Assembly (NCBI GenBank): GCA_943704425.1
Contig: CALSCP010000099.1
Coordinates: 78,383-115,145 of the forward strand
Source of the DNA: Ministeria vibrans ATCC 50519
Lineage: Eukaryota > Protista > Filasterea
Direction: 5' to 3'
Length of the DNA: 36,763 nucleotides
The notes beneath the pieces were generated by a model. That model did not search any database and was not told the DNA's origin. It saw only the letters and a list, made by a program, of their open reading frames with translations. A program made the translations under genes and the position numbers. Positions 27,954 through 36,763 of this stretch are shown here, one piece after another (positions within the stretch are counted from its first letter, which is position 1; each line of letters begins with the position of its first letter).

Positions 27954-28517
27954 TTACACATCTGAGCTGATAGATGGGCCAATAGCTGACATTTCAAACT
28001 CGTCACAGTCGAGCGACGTGCCGAGTCCCGACTCTCTGGCCCATACCTTGAGGCGAGGCACGACCGCTGCCGTTGATGCGTCAGGTGGGCACGTAGTTGT
28101 CATTGTCGTAGACGCTGAAGATAGAGTCCGCGTGGCCGTCGCACTCGCCGCTGCCGCTGCGGCAACAGGTGGACGCGTTGTTGAACTCCGCGTGGCCGGC
28201 GCACCTGCCGCTGCCGCTGCCGCGACAGGTAGAGATGCCGTTGTCGTTGACGTGGACGGTGTCGATGAACTCCGCGTGGCCGGCGCACCTGCCGCTGCCG
28301 CTGCCGCGACAGGTAGAGATGCCGTTGTCGTTGACGTGGACGGTGTTGATGAACTCCGCGTGGCCGGCGCACCTGCCGCTGCCGCTGCCGCGACAGGTAG
28401 AGATGCCGTTGTCGTTGACGTGGACGGTGTCGATGAACTCCGCGTGGCCGGCGCACCTGCCGCTGCCGCTGCCGCGACAGGTAGAGATGCCGTTGTCGTT
28501 GACGTGGACGGTGTTCG
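27954..28517 (-). CDS. Terminal exon with an 84-bp Ser/Thr/Ala-rich tandem repeat (TPSTSTTTASLPVAAAAAAGAPATRSSS); possibly the C-terminal tail of the kinase gene
   Basis: At least 4 near-perfect 84-bp units run into the N gap. One minus frame continues into unique sequence ending AIGPSISSDV*. Linkage to the upstream gene is hidden by the gap. Confidence 0.5.
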   Translation of the reverse strand, partial: RTPSTSTTTASLPVAAAAAAGAPATRSSSTPSTSTTTASLPVAAAAAAGAPATRSSSTPSTSTTTASLPVAAAAAAGAPATRSSSTPSTSTTTASLPVAAAAAAGAPATRSSTTRPPVAAAAAASATATRTLSSASTTMTTTCPPDASTAAVVPRLKVWARESGLGTSLDCDEFEMSAIGPSISSDV

Positions 28518-29499
28518 NNNNNNNNNNNNNNNNNNNNNNNNNNNNNNNNNNNNNNNNNNNNNNNNNNNNNNNNNNNNNNNNNNNNNNNNNNNNNNNNNNN
28601 NNNNNNNNNNNNNNNNNNNNNNNNNNNNNNNNNNNNNNNNNNNNNNNNNNNNNNNNNNNNNNNNNNNNNNNNNNNNNNNNNNNNNNNNNNNNNNNNNNNN
28701 NNNNNNNNNNNNNNNNNNNNNNNNNNNNNNNNNNNNNNNNNNNNNNNNNNNNNNNNNNNNNNNNNNNNNNNNNNNNNNNNNNNNNNNNNNNNNNNNNNNN
28801 NNNNNNNNNNNNNNNNNNNNNNNNNNNNNNNNNNNNNNNNNNNNNNNNNNNNNNNNNNNNNNNNNNNNNNNNNNNNNNNNNNNNNNNNNNNNNNNNNNNN
28901 NNNNNNNNNNNNNNNNNNNNNNNNNNNNNNNNNNNNNNNNNNNNNNNNNNNNNNNNNNNNNNNNNNNNNNNNNNNNNNNNNNNNNNNNNNNNNNNNNNNN
29001 NNNNNNNNNNNNNNNNNNNNNNNNNNNNNNNNNNNNNNNNNNNNNNNNNNNNNNNNNNNNNNNNNNNNNNNNNNNNNNNNNNNNNNNNNNNNNNNNNNNN
29101 NNNNNNNNNNNNNNNNNNNNNNNNNNNNNNNNNNNNNNNNNNNNNNNNNNNNNNNNNNNNNNNNNNNNNNNNNNNNNNNNNNNNNNNNNNNNNNNNNNNN
29201 NNNNNNNNNNNNNNNNNNNNNNNNNNNNNNNNNNNNNNNNNNNNNNNNNNNNNNNNNNNNNNNNNNNNNNNNNNNNNNNNNNNNNNNNNNNNNNNNNNNN
29301 NNNNNNNNNNNNNNNNNNNNNNNNNNNNNNNNNNNNNNNNNNNNNNNNNNNNNNNNNNNNNNNNNNNNNNNNNNNNNNNNNNNNNNNNNNNNNNNNNNNN
29401 NNNNNNNNNNNNNNNNNNNNNNNNNNNNNNNNNNNNNNNNNNNNNNNNNNNNNNNNNNNNNNNNNNNNNNNNNNNNNNNNNNNNNNNNNNNNNNNNNNN
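28518..29499. other. Assembly gap (~980 N) between the 84-bp repeat and a GA-rich microsatellite
   Basis: N run; GA/GAGTAA repeats at 29500-29700. Confidence 0.97.
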
Positions 29500-29929
29500 G
29501 AGAGTAAGAGAGAGAGAGAGAGAGAGAGAGAGTAAGAGAGAGAGAGAGAGAGAGTAAGAGAGAGAGAGAGAGTAAGAGAGAGAGAGAGAGTGATAGAGAG
29601 AGAGAGTAAGAGAGAGAGAGAGTAAGAGAGAGAGAGAGTAAGAGCGAGCAAGCAAGCGAGAGAGAGAGAGAGAAAGAGAGGAGAAAGAAACAAAGTGAAA
29701 GAAAGAGGGTGAGAAAAAGAGAGAGAGAAGAGAAGGCGAAGAAAAGGAAAACAATAGAGGGAGGGAGAAAGATAAGTGAGAGAGACACACAGTAACGGAG
29801 TAGGAAGAAAGAACAAAATGAGAGTAAAGGAAATAGAAAACTTAATAGGTTTAGCGCACTTTCACAAGAATAATGGCACAGCAAATTAACAATTAAAATC
29901 ATTGATAATAATAAAAATAATAATAATAC

Positions 29930-32900
29930 CTCTGGGTAACTCCACTCTCGTTTAAAACAAGCATTGAATTGATTTTCAGAACTCGGTGTTTCCGGGCTGC
30001 GGAAAATCTCGAGTTCGTAAGGTGCAAGTTTGGCGTCCGCGTTGGTCGACAGAGCTCTGAGGAAATATAGCCAGAACTGGCGGAAATGTTGAAGAACACA
30101 GGAGGCGGAGGGGCGTCTTTTGGGATTGGACAGCCGACAGAACAGTGACACACGGTTGCTATCAAGAAAGAGTGTCAGGAATAAAAATAATAAAAATGGA
30201 CGGATGGCTTTCATAGAGGGTACGGTACGGAGTAGTAGGAATAAAAAAGAGAGAGTCTTACATGAATTTGGAAAACAGATTATTCGCATTGAGAATACTA
30301 CGACGTCGTGTGTTTTTCTCCAGATTGACGTGAACAGAGTAAGACCGCAAAGGTGTGACGCCCAAATTATGCGACAGCAGTTGCACCAACGCCTTCGCCC
30401 TCATGGTTTCCGATGCCACGTTTGCCTCGTTGGGGGTTATTTGTTCGGGTGCTCGAAACATCCCCCATAAAAGGTATCCAAGAGCATAAATGTCCGTCTT
30501 GGTTGAAGTCATGCCACGCCAGTGAATTTTGTTGCTTCGTTGCTCTTCAGCGGAAAACGGCGTTGGTGGTGGCTCGGTACTGCGAAAAAACCACCAAATG
30601 TAGTCTTCAGTGGCAGTGAAGGGCAGCAGCCACGGGTCTGCCTCAGGTGGAAGGATTCTCAGTGTGTTGGTGCTATGGATATACCCACGAGATGATGTCA
30701 GACGACGAACTATTCAACAAGGAAAAAAAAAAGAAAAAAAAATAGGGTACGTAATCGTCGCGGCCTGGCAACCGTTCCCGAGGGCCCAAGACAAGCCGTA
30801 GTCAAAGAGAAGAACGTTCTCGCCGTCATTGCTCACCATCACATTCCGCAAAGCCAAATCACTGAAGAGAATTAGAATTAAAAGACAGGAATAATTATTA
30901 GAGCAAAGACACAGTGTTTCGAGAGAGAAGGAGAGAGCTTAATTAATGAAGGCAGAAAGTAACAAAGTGGGAGTAGAGAAACAAAATTAAAAATAGAAGA
31001 GGGGTGAAATGCAAACAAAGTGATGCTTTCGCTTACCGATGCACAATGCATAGAGAGTGCATAAATTCCACTGCTTCCAGAAGTTGACAGGCAAACTTGA
31101 ACTAAAACAAATTAATAATTATTATAATTATTATAATTGAAAAAAAAAAAAACAAACCTACCCTCTTTGCAAAAGGAACGACTTCTCCCGAAAACAAATA
31201 TGACTGCGGGGACAATAGCAGTATTAATAATAATTATTAATATTATAAATCATTATTTTGATACTATACCGAAAGAGAACCATTTCGGTAGAGGGGCATA
31301 ATCAGAATGTACTCTAGATCTCTCGTGTTTTCAATTCGGTGCTTGACAAACCCAAACATATGTGCGCAGAACTGCTTGTGAAGTCCCATTCGCATAGACA
31401 TTTTAATCTCGTTCCTAGATATAGAAAAGAATAAACGTTACTCCGTACTTGCAGCGATGTACTCAATGGCACGACACAAGCCAAGGGCAAGCACATATAA
31501 GAATCATAGAAACAAAATGGAAAAAATATTAAAGCAACAGAGAACGACTTACTCGGCAGCAACAGAATTCCCTCCATTGGTCTGCATATTCGCATCCTCA
31601 GTCACAGTTGTAATCTTCACAACATAGGGTCCAAACCCATCCCTGCCTAAAACGTTGCCGTAGTAGATTTTACAATTTTCTTTGTCAACGAGGCAGTTTT
31701 CAAGACGAATGTCCACTTTGTAGGTGGCTGGTGGCACAACAACTATACACACGCCCAGATTGACGACCGTTAAAGGAGCAATAATCTTAGACGAAAGCAT
31801 TTTCGTGTTGTCGCCCCGCGAGAACGCCATCGAGCTCGTTCCAGTGATCTCCGAGTAAAACTCATGTCCAGAATTCGCGAGGGACTCGCTCAATGTGCGC
31901 TTGTTCCAGAAACACAGCAACCTTTTCGTTTTGAAAATCCACGCCACAATCACAACAATGACGATGAAAATGCCGGCAGAAACGGCTCCAATCAATGGAG
32001 CTAAGCTTTTTTGACGACAGGAAAAGCTACCGACGGTGTTGACGCAAGTGCTTTTCTTGTCACAGGGTGCACTGGTGCACTCGTCGATGTCTTCTTCGCA
32101 CAGGGCACCAGTAAAGCCGCCCATACACACACAGGCAAACTGATTGACGGCGTCCTCACAAGTACCACCATTGGTACAGGGACTCGACGCACACTCGTTC
32201 AAGTCTGTCTCGCATCGGTGCCCCGAGAAGCCGCTGGCACAGAAGCATTGAAAATTGTCGCTGGTCGATCCTTGGGAGCATGTGCCGTCGTTGGAGCAGG
32301 GCGACGAGGCACACTCGTTAATGTCCATCTCACACCAAACGCTTGTGAACCCGCTGGCACACAAACACGTAAAGTGATCCGCTTCGTTCATGCACGTACC
32401 ACCATTGGTGCAAGGACTCGACGCGCACTCGTCCACGTCGCTCTCACACAGCATGCCAGTGTAGCCACTTTGGCACACACACGCAAAAAAATTGGGCAAT
32501 GCACCTTGGTTGCACGTGGCTCCGTTGTGACACGGCGTCGACGCACACTCATTCATGTCACCCTCGCAAAGGGTTCCGGTGAACCCGGCGGCACAGGCAC
32601 ACGAGAAGGCGTCCACACCAATGCTGTGCGAACAGGAAGCGCCATTGGCACAAGGTGATGACGCACACTCGTCGACGTCGTTCTCGCATCGAATGCCCAT
32701 GAATCCCAAAGGACATTCACACAGAAAGATGTCTGGCGTGCTGCCTTGCGAGCAGGTGCCACCGTTGGTGCAGGGACTCGAGGCGCATTCGTCCACGTCC
32801 GTCTCGCATTGAAGTCCCCAGAACCCATCGGCACAAAAGCACTGAAAGAAGTCGGCGCTCGATCCTTGAGAACACGTACCGCCATTAGAGCAAGGCGACG

Positions 32901-33996
32901 AGTCGCACTCGACAATGTCTGTTTCGCAGTGAGCGCCAACAAATCCGTCGAGACAATCGCACGACAAGCGATTCACTCCGTCGGTACAGGTAGCGCCGTT
33001 GGTGCACGGACTCGATGCACACTCGTCGACGTTTGTCTCGCAAAGTTCACCCGTGTAGCCTGGCTGACACGCGCAGCTGAAGAGCGTACTGTTGGCGATG
33101 GCCGCTCTGACAAACGTGGCGTTGAGTCGAAACACTGGCGAGGCGCTCACAAGAAATGGATTGGCTGTGACGGCGCAGGCAAACTCGGACGATTTGGTGA
33201 AGTAGCCGAGGTTTCCACCGGGCACATAGAGGGACCTGACGAGATGGCGGGCGTCGGAGGTGCCGTTGTAGCACAGCTCGACAAGCAAACCGCTGCGACC
33301 GTCGTACGCAAACGACTGCACGTTGAAGGGATGCGTGCGCCAGCCGGTGCCAGACGCGGGGTTGGTGAGCACTGCAACGGTCGTGAACGACGTGTCGATC
33401 GCCGAAACGTTGTATGTGAGTTCTTTGAGCGAGTCGGATACATGAGAGATTTTGATCGTCGTCTCGGTAATGGTGCCGTCAAAATCGACAACGTTGTAGG
33501 CAAGGGAGTGGATGAGGCCACGAGTAATTCCCACGGCGGAGAGAAGCGAGGCTGGGAGCAGAACAAACTGCCTGGGAAAAAATAAATAAATAATTAATAA
33601 CATTCGACCCGAGCGTGGAAAAAAAAAAATAAGGGAACGTTCGACTTGAGACTTTCACTTTTCGTCCGGAACGTACCTCGACGCCGTGAAAATACCGGCT
33701 GCAAATAGGGTTTTGTCTCCCGACTGGTACGGGTCAACCTCAATCAACTGGTGGTGGTGAACGACTGCTTCTGTGCCGCGGAGACAGCGTGCGGAGTTTT
33801 GGCAGGGATGCGACAAGCAAATGTCGAAAAACGTTTCACACGCTGCGCCAGTGTAGCCCGCGTCGCATTCGCACGTCTCAAAGGCGTTGTCACAAAACCC
33901 GTTGATGGTACAGGGACTGCTCTCGCAGAAAGCAAAGACGCGCACCGCAGCAAAACTGAAACTGAAGCAAAGCACCAAAATCGAAACGGATTGCAT
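29930..33996 (-). CDS. Receptor tyrosine-kinase-like protein: signal peptide, EGF, split EGF with inserted domain, about 9 EGF, TM, divergent kinase (3' end unresolved)
   Basis: ATG 33996 MQSVSILVLCFSFSFAAVRVFA; TM 'LIGAVSAGIFIVIVVIVAWIF'KTKR. Kinase exons spliced by eye: 'KIYYG..YVVK', 'ENEIKM', 'LIMPLYRNGSL', 'FACQLLEAVEFMHSLCIVHR|DLALRNVMV', 'LFDYGLS', 'LRILPPE', 'TSTKTDIYALGYLLWGMF', 'NPKRRPSA'. Confidence 0.85.
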
Positions 33997-34582
33997 ATCC
34001 CTGGGCGGAGGCGCTGTCACAGACGCACAGGTTAAGCGCTAGTGCTGGTTACCACCGTGTGCTCCACAGTCTACAATGTTCTTTGATCAAAAGAAAAGAA
34101 AAAAATCCTATTCTTTTTGAGCCAGAATTTAGGTTGTCAATTCTTGTGTTTGTTTCATAACGACAGACAGGTGGTAGTACTAAGTGAGGCTCTGGCACCA
34201 CGAATTAACAGCTCCGTCTGCGGACGTCAGTTGCTTGTCTGTCGAGTGTCGACCAGGAAGAGTGAAGTTAAAGTCCAGCTAAACGTGGGGTCGGGGGAAA
34301 AATAAATCGGACCGGTGATTGACGGCCGCGGGCCGTTGGCTGCAGCAGAGGTGCAGTAGTACTAATGTGCTTGACTCCTGAGTCGTCACTCATGAGTCAG
34401 TCATGACTGCTTGTGTCACATGTGGTGGTATATTGTATAGTTATTATTTTTCGTTGACCTCAAATTTCTTATTAATTAAAGGGAGTCGATTGAGTCGAAA
34501 GTTTTGTCGAAAAAATTAAAAATTAAAAATGGTGCATGATAAGAAAAATCGTCCAATTTCTGTCACGAACACTTTTTCTTGA
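33997..34582. promoter_or_regulatory. Bidirectional promoter region between two EGF genes, with clustered TGACTC/GAGTCA palindromes
   Basis: Head-to-head ATGs at 33996 (-) and 34583 (+); 34372-34424 tgactcctgagtcgtcactcatgagtcagtcatgact...cacatgtg contains a perfect TGAGTCA. Confidence 0.5.
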
Positions 34583-36763
34583 ATGAGTTCCGTTACACCT
34601 TGTGCCACGCATGTGGTGCTTTTGCTAAGCTTTTTGATTAGCCTTTGCAACGGTTTGACGTGCGGAAACGGCGGCACCCTTGTCGGCGCTGCTTGTGTTT
34701 GTCCGCCTGACCTTACGGGCGCTCTGTGCGAAACCCCAGCTGTTTGCGCCTCGCTTCCTTGTACCAATGGAGGAACATGTTCTATGGCGTTCCAAGCGTC
34801 TGTTCCAGTTCTCAAGGCGGACGCAGGCTCATTGGGACCAAATGGCATCACAATTGGCACAACCGTTGTGAACTCGTGGTCGTTTAACCTCACAAGCGCA
34901 ACCGCACAAGTCCTGACCCACCTTGGGACTTACGACGTGTCCGCCGATGGACTGGTAGAGGATAGACCAGTGGGCATCTTCAACAGCGCCGGGCGTCTTC
35001 TCGGCCAGGTTGTCATCACGAGTCAATCGCCAATTGACTCGCAAGTTGACCCGACACTCTTTTTTCGATATGAAAAGCTTGCGAGTGAGGTGGTGCTTCA
35101 ACCTGGCCACACCTACACCATAGCAGCTCTCCATACTCCAGAGTACTTAACGGACTCTGCCACGAGCGACACCCTGTTCACTCTGGAGCGTCCGATTGTC
35201 GTCGTGTCCACTCGAATTTTCTCGTCAAATACATTGGGAATCGATGGGAACGGCCTTAAGCTTGAAAACACGTCTCCGACTATGATACGGTTTGGGCCCA
35301 ACATGAAGTTCAGGGGCCCTCCAGCGCCGTCGCAGTTTGTCTGTGACTGTCCTCCATTCACAACGGGGCCGTTCTGTGAGGTCTCCAACGACGCATGCGC
35401 CTCGTCACCCTGCATGAACGGCGGGTCGTGCGGAGGAGTGTTCGACGGACCAGAGGCAGAAGCGGTGTTGACCAACCAGGCCCAGTTTCTGGCGGCCCAG
35501 TCGAACATTGGCAGCATCGTCTCGTGGACCTTTAACGTCTCGACGGACCTTGCTCTCTCGCACTTGGGCGTTTTCGATCATCAAAGCAATGGCTTTGCAA
35601 CAAGTCATCCAGTTGGGTTTTATGACAGTTCGGGAACGCTATTGGTTGAGGTCCTTGTCACTAGCACGTCGCCTGTGGAACGGGAAGTCTCATCCCCTCT
35701 GTTTTTTCGATACGAAGCGCTGCAAACTCCCATCGACCTCGCCCCTGGTGAGCAATACACCATCGTTGTCCTGTACCCGAGCAACGACCCGGAGGACGAT
35801 GATGCTCTTGCCGTTGTCTACACCATGCATCCAAACTTGAAGCTGGTGAAGAGCTTTTACCAGGCAAGCGATGTTCTTGCGCATCCCAGCACTCTCTCAC
35901 CGTCAGCAACTGCATCGACCACGGAGTATGTGCTGTTCGGAGGGAATATGAAACTTCGCGGGGAGACGCGAGACGAGTACACCTGCAGGTGTCCATCGCA
36001 TTCCAGTGGTGTCAACTGCGAAGTCACAGTGAACGAGTGCGCGTCGAGTCCGTGTCGGAACGGCGCGACCTGTGCAGACCTGGCCAATGGCTTTGTGTGC
36101 ACCTGTGCTGCCGGCTACACCGGTGTGGCGTGCGCCGTGGGTATTGACGAGTGCGTGTCGCAGCCGTGCCAAAACGGCGGGAGTTGTGACCAGGGTGCTC
36201 AGCTCAACTTCTGGCGTTGTGTGTGTCCAAGTGGATGGACTGGGAGCCAGTGCGAGTCGGATGTCAACGAGTGCGACTCGTCGCCGTGCTCGAATGGTGC
36301 AACCTGCACTAGCAATGTGAATGGCTATACATGCATGTGTGCAAAGGGGTATAACGGTTCCAAGTGTGACACGAATGTGAACGAGTGCTTGTCGAGTCCG
36401 TGTTTAAATCATGCCTCGTGCAACGATGGGATTGACAGCTATGTGTGTGAATGCGCAGCTGGATTTGCTGGTGCGACGTGTGAGTCGGATGTGGACGAGT
36501 GTCTTTCATCTCCCTGTTTGAACGGTGGATCGTGCACCAACCTTGAAGGGGCCTTTTCTTGCGGCTGCCCAAGCGGCTTCTTCGGCGTACTTTGCAATGT
36601 GGAAACTGACGAATGCGCTTCAAGTCCTTGCTCCAATAATGCGGCGTGTACGGACGTCGTTGATGGTTTTAGCTGTCAATGCGATTCTGGGTTTACCGGT
36701 GCGTTGTGTGAGTCGGACATGAACGAGTGTGCGTCGTCGCCGTGCATCAACGGCGGCACATGC
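34583..36763 (+). CDS. Secreted/surface EGF-repeat protein with two DUF4082-like domains inserted into EGF modules (3' partial)
   Basis: Uninterrupted 727-codon frame from ATG 34583 to the window end (absent from the ORF track because it has no stop). MSSVTPCATHVVLLLSFLISLCNG signal-like; EGF; two split EGFs; then at least 6 canonical Ca-EGF repeats. Confidence 0.9.
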   Translation, partial: MSSVTPCATHVVLLLSFLISLCNGLTCGNGGTLVGAACVCPPDLTGALCETPAVCASLPCTNGGTCSMAFQASVPVLKADAGSLGPNGITIGTTVVNSWSFNLTSATAQVLTHLGTYDVSADGLVEDRPVGIFNSAGRLLGQVVITSQSPIDSQVDPTLFFRYEKLASEVVLQPGHTYTIAALHTPEYLTDSATSDTLFTLERPIVVVSTRIFSSNTLGIDGNGLKLENTSPTMIRFGPNMKFRGPPAPSQFVCDCPPFTTGPFCEVSNDACASSPCMNGGSCGGVFDGPEAEAVLTNQAQFLAAQSNIGSIVSWTFNVSTDLALSHLGVFDHQSNGFATSHPVGFYDSSGTLLVEVLVTSTSPVEREVSSPLFFRYEALQTPIDLAPGEQYTIVVLYPSNDPEDDDALAVVYTMHPNLKLVKSFYQASDVLAHPSTLSPSATASTTEYVLFGGNMKLRGETRDEYTCRCPSHSSGVNCEVTVNECASSPCRNGATCADLANGFVCTCAAGYTGVACAVGIDECVSQPCQNGGSCDQGAQLNFWRCVCPSGWTGSQCESDVNECDSSPCSNGATCTSNVNGYTCMCAKGYNGSKCDTNVNECLSSPCLNHASCNDGIDSYVCECAAGFAGATCESDVDECLSSPCLNGGSCTNLEGAFSCGCPSGFFGVLCNVETDECASSPCSNNAACTDVVDGFSCQCDSGFTGALCESDMNECASSPCINGGTC

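Follow-up and report, generated by a model that had tools for sequence, protein, structure and literature searches.

Predicted jelly-roll domains inserted between the third and fourth cysteines of EGF repeats in a protist genome

How can an EGF repeat accommodate a complete second domain between its third and fourth cysteines, and does it still form an EGF? This question was raised by two head-to-head genes in the window, i.e. the whole stretch of 36,763 nucleotides analysed here, which lies on contig C99 (positions 78383-115145) of a 29.7-Mb eukaryotic assembly of 2860 contigs. The same assembly was the genome searched. The genes are referred to as the plus gene and the minus gene, and their products contain three EGF repeats that are split at the same position. 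The layout of these repeats is C-x4-C-x5-C ... C-x-C-x8-C, with the insert located between Cys3 and Cys4. The split EGF was confirmed as a real, expressed and recurrent nested-domain module which occurs genome-wide. According to the reading preferred here, to which a probability of about 0.8 is given, these are EGF-array proteins in which a complete jelly-roll sandwich is looped out of the Cys3-Cys4 hairpin while the two halves still form one EGF.

The coordinates and motifs of the three split repeats, as reported in a preliminary description of this DNA, were found to be correct: all six Cys are kept in each module at canonical spacing, and the Gly and aromatic consensus residues are present. 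The family of the plus-gene inserts A and B is designated as type 1 and that of the minus-gene insert as type 2. The features of the split modules are as follows.

34583-36763, plus strand: plus gene; ATG at 34583, open frame that reaches the end of both window and contig
34745-34780, plus strand: N half of split EGF-A (Cys1-Cys3), CASLPCTNGGTC; from the translation, at positions 1-12 of the Pfam EGF profile
34781-35335, plus strand: insert A, type 1 (DUF4082-like), a predicted beta-sandwich of 185 amino acids (aa); AlphaFold2 (AF2) model m31f1ab75a1d0
35336-35377, plus strand: C half of split EGF-A (Cys4-Cys6), FVCDCPPFTTGPFC; from the translation, with profile positions matching the C halves of Notch EGFs
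35396-35431, plus strand: N half of split EGF-B, CASSPCMNGGSC; from the translation
35432-35977, plus strand: insert B, type 1, 182 aa; sub-threshold match to Pfam DUF4082, 36% identity to insert A (E 2e-27)
35978-36019, plus strand: C half of split EGF-B, YTCRCPSHSSGVNC; from the translation
33677-33996, minus strand: coding exon 1 of the minus gene; ATG at 33996, signal peptide, complete EGF1, N half and the first 35 insert residues
33819-33784, minus strand: N half of the split EGF of the minus gene, CLSHPCQNSARC; from the translation
33572-33676, minus strand: GT..AG intron of 105 nt inside the insert, with an in-frame stop; joint in the RNA-like runs X1 and X2, absent from the DNA run X7
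33082-33571, minus strand: part of the type 2 insert encoded by exon 2; with the C half it aligns to positions 51-223 of the type 2 hidden Markov model (HMM)
33040-33081, minus strand: C half of the split EGF of the minus gene, FSCACQPGYTGELC; from the translation

The plus-gene product begins with a hydrophobic N-terminus (predicted signal peptide) and a short EGF1, which are followed by the split modules A and B and by ordinary EGFs. Pfam EGF matched this product with an E-value of 4.3e-47. As the gene is truncated by the contig end, its product is only a putative receptor. The linker between Cys6 of module A and Cys1 of module B is six residues long, which is the usual length, and the linkers to the neighbouring EGFs were also normal. 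In the minus gene, 702 nt separate the EGF halves, and the removal of the 105-nt intron results in an insert of 199 aa. When the type 2 HMM was built without the window row, the exon-1 piece aligned to its positions 1-40, and the exon-2 piece was matched at positions 51-223 with an E-value of 7.7e-25. The preliminary description had placed the minus-gene insert correctly but missed its intron at 33676-33572.

The transcription of the inserts was followed in the contigs of four sequencing runs (X1, X2, X6 and X7), which were aligned to positions 31500-36763. X1 and X2 are RNA-like, the run label being only a guess, X7 is DNA, and X6 is a polyA RNA-Seq run of a marine sample; the runs matching the stretch include seawater and marine metagenomes. 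The contigs of such runs give neither expression levels nor transcript ends. In X1 and X2, positions 31552-33570 and 33676-34075 (or 34097) were joined in one record, which skips exactly 105 nt with GT..AG borders on the minus strand, whereas the DNA run X7 crosses the same site without a joint. The plus gene was spanned by the same X1 and X2 runs from 34661 to 36718 without any joint. The depth in the intergenic region at 34140-34600 was approximately 0-2 in X1 and X2 versus 335 in X7. Since the 105-nt intron is removed and the intergenic region is nearly uncovered, X1 and X2 behave as transcript assemblies. The inserts are exonic by these data, as the preliminary description had taken them to be: they are covered by X1 and X2 contigs, and the X6 contigs at 34599-34861, 35541-35794 and 35767-35943 reach inside both plus-gene inserts.

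Two differences between the assembly and the runs were recorded separately. Inside insert A, the assembly deviates from the RNA-like X1 and X2 contigs in clusters of bases at 35150-35173 and 35255-35261, which are probably strain or allele differences. The DNA run X7 lacks 3 nt at 33593, within the minus-gene intron.

The halves on both sides of the inserts were compared with ordinary EGFs. Pfam EGF matched the halves in 20 of 23 and in 8 of 8 modules; positions 1-12 of the profile were covered by N halves and positions 16-31 by C halves. The first 15-16 positions of the module profiles corresponded to residues ~5-20 of solved Notch, factor VII and factor IX EGFs, which are 40-42 residues long, and the last 17 positions corresponded to residues ~20-38 of the same kind of EGF chain. 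The EGF consensus, SSPC.NGG.C and F/Y-x-C-x-C-x2-G-F/Y-x-G-x2-C, was conserved in the 41 split modules of the genome that are described below. As each half contains three Cys, an odd number, a bond between the halves is needed. In the AF2 models, long strands were predicted directly after Cys3 and directly before Cys4, namely E11-16 and E193-201 in type 1 and E12-27 and E198-217 in type 2. This layout would be expected of an extended EGF hairpin that carries a domain. Taken together, the two halves most likely still form one EGF in which they are linked by Cys2-Cys4.

The two insert families were characterized by profile searches. Pfam DUF4082 (PF13313) was matched by 12 of the 23 type 1 modules at E<=1, the best E-value being 1.1e-11, and the nearest Atlas cluster of the type 1 insert was a DUF4082 cluster. 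Both inserts were nearest to bacterial, archaeal and phage clusters in the Atlas. The type 2 modules had no Pfam match except on the EGF halves. When the type 2 profile was searched against 1.84 billion representative proteins, 6736 were found at E<=1e-3 and 359 at E<=1e-30, with the best E-value of 2e-109. The best 150 of the 6736 relatives were 222-6928 aa long, had no EGF and contained up to 14 copies of the domain. The sole 222-aa protein among the relatives (P0044), which originates from a Logan run, has the same sequence as the L017 module of this genome. The relatives examined contained Por_Secre_tail, fn3, MAM or GEVED domains and were either named as type IX secretion system (T9SS) type A sorting-domain proteins of Ignavibacteria or came from Bacteroidia. 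The earlier proposal of bacterial-type globular inserts was thereby specified as a DUF4082-like domain for type 1 and a family of T9SS-exported bacterial proteins for type 2. A bacterial or phage origin of the insert domains is plausible.

The folds of the inserts were predicted with AF2. Window module A was used for type 1, resulting in a predicted local distance difference test (pLDDT) score of 83.6 and a predicted template modelling (pTM) score of 0.81. For type 2 the intron-less paralog L015 was used, because the window module is split by the intron; the corresponding values were 80.9 and 0.75. The Foldseek E-values were weak (>=2e-4), and VIA-align Z scores were used instead. The same ten top chains were obtained for both models, with Z scores of 7.7-11.1. 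These were the PHR domains of MYCBP2 and BTBD2, the lectin-like domain of Cwp84, the carbohydrate-binding module (CBM) of acetyl-xylan esterase (AcXE), the N-domain of polyvinyl alcohol (PVA) esterase, and phage tail-tip, baseplate and capsid-decoration proteins. The PHR domains were aligned to type 1 with Z scores of 10.9, 10.6 and 9.9 over 134-139 residues at 10-16% identity. Further neighbours of type 2 were CBM32, CBM35, CBM6, the Eph ligand-binding domain and the laminin beta2 LF domain (Z 6.0). Judging from the models, types 1 and 2 are jelly-roll sandwiches of one fold class. In the profile-profile comparison only the last 41 columns of the two types were aligned, comprising the last strand and the C half-EGF, and homology between the types is therefore not established by sequence; the pairwise BLASTP E-value of 0.009 is only suggestive. 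The minus-gene insert had been described as not obviously related to the other two, which holds for the sequence but not for the fold, as the ten neighbours are the same.

In ~60 loci of the genome, 41 distinct split EGFs of the same layout were counted, 22 of them with a type 1 insert, 17 with a type 2 insert and two with a 100-aa insert. The search with insert B gave at least 24 type 1 matches and the search with the minus-gene insert gave 7 places. Among the 24 type 1 matches, 21 were fully nested and one was cut after the N half by the end of a 563-bp contig. One more (L027, C2169:5000-7400) has the type 1 domain at the start of the open frame with only the C half in frame, and its N half may lie in an upstream exon; the last one (L022) is apparently un-nested. 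The type 2 profile found at least 23 modules, 21 of which span the profile from end to end including both half-EGFs. The other two are the window minus gene and its 66%-identical paralog on C1679, with the intron at the same place. Every type 2 copy examined in the genome was EGF-nested.

Since each insert family has at least 20 copies that are already EGF-nested, the three inserts of the window are duplicated composite modules. The independent insertions into the same loop that had been suggested earlier are replaced by duplication of the composite. The suggested position at the distal tip of EGF stalks fits the window genes, in which the split modules are EGF 2-3 from the N-terminus, but not the paralogous modules, which are located deep within long EGF arrays.

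An unrelated fold was detected at the same site in locus L062 (L062:1435-2223:+, on C524). There, the halves CNPWSCLNGGTC and CTCPAGYTGARC enclose 239 aa including a VWA match (PF00092, E 4.5e-6, above the cut-off), and ordinary EGFs and a long Arg/Pro-rich repeat tail follow. The search for VWA in the genome resulted in nine matches. Of the eight examined, one is EGF-nested and seven do not adjoin EGFs; the ninth lies on a 501-bp contig. With the VWA of L062, at least one unrelated alpha/beta fold has been accommodated in the Cys3-Cys4 hairpin. Two split EGFs on C1633 (L053:1501-1872:- and L053:883-1254:-) carry a 100-aa insert with three Cys, which fits neither of the two insert profiles and represents a further insert type. 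At least four insert types were thus seen, namely the DUF4082-like, the bacterial T9SS-associated, the VWA and the 100-aa Cys-containing one. The reusable modular scaffold envisaged in the preliminary description is borne out by the 41 split EGFs and by the VWA fold at the same site, and L062 supports the idea better than the three inserts of the window do.

Several observations were made on the paralogs. Locus L021 (C2737, 563 bp) is nearly identical to the N-terminal region of the plus gene but has EGFs upstream in place of the signal peptide, and represents a paralog or else a haplotig. Two short type 1 variants of 137-142 aa (L025:2364-2861:- and L026:935-1417:+) are devoid of the last third of the domain and close with an atypical C half (CFCDNAASSDVC and CYCATTDPEHMC, respectively). 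On contigs C2169, C320, C2675, C439 and C99, modules of types 1 and 2 are separated by no more than a few kb and often share the same strand. The two types are mixed within genes or gene clusters, the head-to-head pair of the window being one case.

Several points weigh against the looped-out sandwich in a reunited EGF. In the window, DUF4082 was matched by insert B with only 21.9 bits (E 1.8e-4; cut-off 28.4) and not at all by insert A. The type 2 fold was predicted on L015, which is only ~31% identical to the window type 2 piece, and the AF2 alignments comprised only 21-23 paralogs of a single genome. In L022 (C2772) the type 1 domain stands at the start of the open frame and is followed by ordinary EGFs without a C half. 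We know of no sugar binding by the PHR domains or by laminin L4 and LF, which belong to the same fold class. The pairing of the halves is deduced from sequence logic and predicted secondary structure. The half-EGFs might accordingly stay apart, as linkers or with other disulfides, which would leave the sandwich between two degenerate EGF remnants. The pLDDT of the half-EGF blocks, only 60-85, would allow for such an arrangement. It is nevertheless improbable, as the six Cys and the consensus residues are kept over 41 modules, the halves map onto both halves of single solved EGFs, the three Cys per half need a cross-half bond, and laminin L4 in the LE module is exactly such a case of a split module (PMC5338690). 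The probability is close to negligible that the inserts are outside the proteins altogether, being introns, retained introns or bacterial-DNA assembly chimeras, even though the inserted families are otherwise bacterial and one true intron does lie inside the minus-gene insert. The reading as spliced introns fails because the RNA contigs cross the inserts and remove only the 105-nt intron. In addition, the frames are open across inserts A and B over 555 and 546 nt, respectively, the paralogs keep the inserts at the protein level with 25-37% identity, and the composite is present on many contigs, within EGF open frames that can be as long as 4239 aa.

The preferred reading, a sandwich looped out of an intact EGF, has also to be weighed against membership in a known family. 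The preliminary description knew of no account of this architecture, but the design principle is already known: the laminin L4 domain, a CBM-like sandwich, is inserted at the same site, between Cys3 and Cys4 of the LE module (PMC5338690). L4 and LF are CBM35-like sandwiches whose function has been called enigmatic, and the LE array stays regular around LF (PMC5338690). In laminin alpha and gamma and in perlecan, as in the proteins studied here, a CBM-like sandwich is thus placed at Cys3-Cys4 inside a rod of tandem modules. This common insertion site, the same class of inserted fold and the presence of laminin beta2 LF among the type 2 neighbours would be accounted for if the present proteins were divergent members of the laminin/perlecan family (L4 in LE) and not a separate invention. 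That explanation is very improbable. The laminin host is the 8-Cys LE, whereas the hosts here are ordinary 6-Cys EGFs matching EGF (PF00008) and hEGF, not Laminin_EGF. The laminin insert is Laminin_B, which had no match in the present inserts; these match DUF4082 or nothing, type 2 belonging to the bacterial T9SS-associated family, and LAMININ_IV_B was found only with E 0.16 in one of 23 modules. Laminin L4 was absent from the top 50 structural neighbours of the models, LF alone being there, and neither an LN domain nor a coiled coil was seen. In contrast to the animal laminins and perlecan, the composite occurs here in a protist and in dozens of copies in many proteins. The 6-Cys EGF host, the other passenger families, the high copy number and the protist are what is new, whereas the laminin-type design itself is known.

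Other known systems resemble the split modules in part. In Pfam, DUF4082 is found mostly in bacterial surface proteins, whereas here it lies within the EGFs of a eukaryotic protein. The bacterial T9SS family is found in T9SS-exported and related giant surface proteins of Bacteroidia and Ignavibacteria, each of which carries 2-14 copies of the domain, and shares the GW..F, DG.SN and Cys pair motifs with type 2; in contrast to its EGF-free best 150 members, the type 2 domains are EGF-nested. The PHR domains of MYCBP2 and BTBD2 are alike in structure but are cytoplasmic and not EGF-nested, and Pfam PHR (PF08005) had no match in the window proteins or the type 1 modules. The VWA in the EGF of L062 can be compared with the integrin alpha I domain, a ligand-binding VWA with adjacent termini that is looped out of a beta-propeller. 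The integrin case differs in the host domain and the insertion site, and the likeness is an analogy only. In the literature search no paper linking DUF4082 to EGF was found, and for insertions between the third and fourth Cys of EGF-type modules only laminin and perlecan papers were retrieved.

Homologs of the composite module were searched for with the plus-gene product and with two profiles. Residues 54-479 of the plus-gene product gave only EGF-level matches with 8-9% coverage, a blank that is uninformative due to the length window and the word index of the search. Profile A2 found nothing at E<=1e-3. With profile A4, only generic EGF proteins and two short bacterial-looking proteins without EGFs (P0165 and P0166) were obtained; no second eukaryote with the composite module was found in this search, which is not evidence of absence.

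The remaining features of the locus concern mainly the C-terminal part of the minus gene.

31552-33039, minus strand: rest of exon 2; ~9 ordinary EGFs, a transmembrane (TM) helix and the start of the cytoplasmic tail; ends at 31552
30261-31437, minus strand: downstream open pieces, putative exons, unjoined; kinase-like motifs DLALRN..DYG and TDIYALGYLLWGMF
33997-34582, between the genes: divergent intergenic region of 586 bp between the start codons; near-zero RNA-like depth

Pfam EGF matched exon 2 of the minus gene with an E-value of 1e-46. The TM helix at 31933-32004 is a hydrophobic stretch, LAPLIGAVSAGIFIVIVVIVAWIF, followed by KTKR, and was read from the sequence. Read in the same way, the minus-gene product has a signal-like start, an ectodomain and a single TM helix. 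The RNA contig piece stops at 31552 and then continues in sequence beyond the aligned stretch 31500-36763. The minus-gene paralog (L014/L064, C1679:141474-148000), whose intron interrupts the insert at the same codon, has the same EGF and TM layout and keeps the kinase-like pieces HSDLALRN..DYG and RPSAS..FRQF.

The tail of the minus gene is likely a divergent kinase or pseudokinase, as suggested by these motifs. The best Pfam score of the window pieces was obtained with Pkinase (E 0.039, 13.8 bits, exons scored singly), and no solved kinase of the PDB was matched by phmmer with the pieces scored singly. The catalytic-loop piece of the paralog reached PK_Tyr_Ser-Thr with an E-value of 5e-4 and 19.9 bits in comparison with the cut-off of 23.1. 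The wiring of the receptor to a kinase, as claimed in the preliminary description, is thus backed by sub-threshold matches only, obtained with the exons scored one by one. Just downstream of the kinase-like pieces, window positions 28100-30289 include an assembly gap, filled with N, that is bordered by simple repeats rich in Leu/Ser and Arg/Gln, and the guanine-cytosine content falls there to 0.20-0.34.

In the proposed explanation, both genes would encode secreted or membrane proteins built of EGF arrays. In selected EGFs the Cys3-Cys4 hairpin would be opened, and a jelly-roll beta-sandwich of ~185-200 aa would be looped out of it. The Cys1-Cys3 and Cys5-Cys6 bonds would be formed within the halves, and the Cys2-Cys4 bond would tie the halves together. 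The EGF rod would remain continuous and the sandwich would project from it, as laminin L4 does from the LE module. Both composite modules would have been multiplied by duplication to dozens of copies in the genome. Judging from the fold, the sandwiches may act as binding heads for a glycan or surface ligand, and the sensing of bacteria or glycans suggested in the preliminary description would likewise be read from the fold only; the domains may be of bacterial origin, and the minus-gene product may signal via its divergent kinase-like tail.

A broader interpretation is put forward only tentatively. The Cys3-Cys4 hairpin of ordinary EGFs might be a general docking site of this lineage for passenger domains, several of them from bacteria or phages. 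Surface proteins for recognition or adhesion, some of them kinase-tailed, would then form a large and diversifying repertoire, and laminin L4 in LE would be one animal example of an older and wider mechanism. How much weight the finding carries depends on the identity of the organism and on the occurrence of the design in other genomes. Standard domain callers miss half-EGFs that flank a domain, which is a warning for annotation. Until now, laminin and perlecan had provided essentially all known cases of nested domains in EGF-type modules. In the present genome this site, in the most common of the extracellular modules, is occupied in dozens of expressed copies by bacterial-type sandwiches and also by a VWA domain. 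Domains of bacterial surface proteins have probably been incorporated here into adhesion or receptor proteins of a eukaryote, and the modules provide a natural series for asking what effect a Cys3-Cys4 insert has on an EGF rod.

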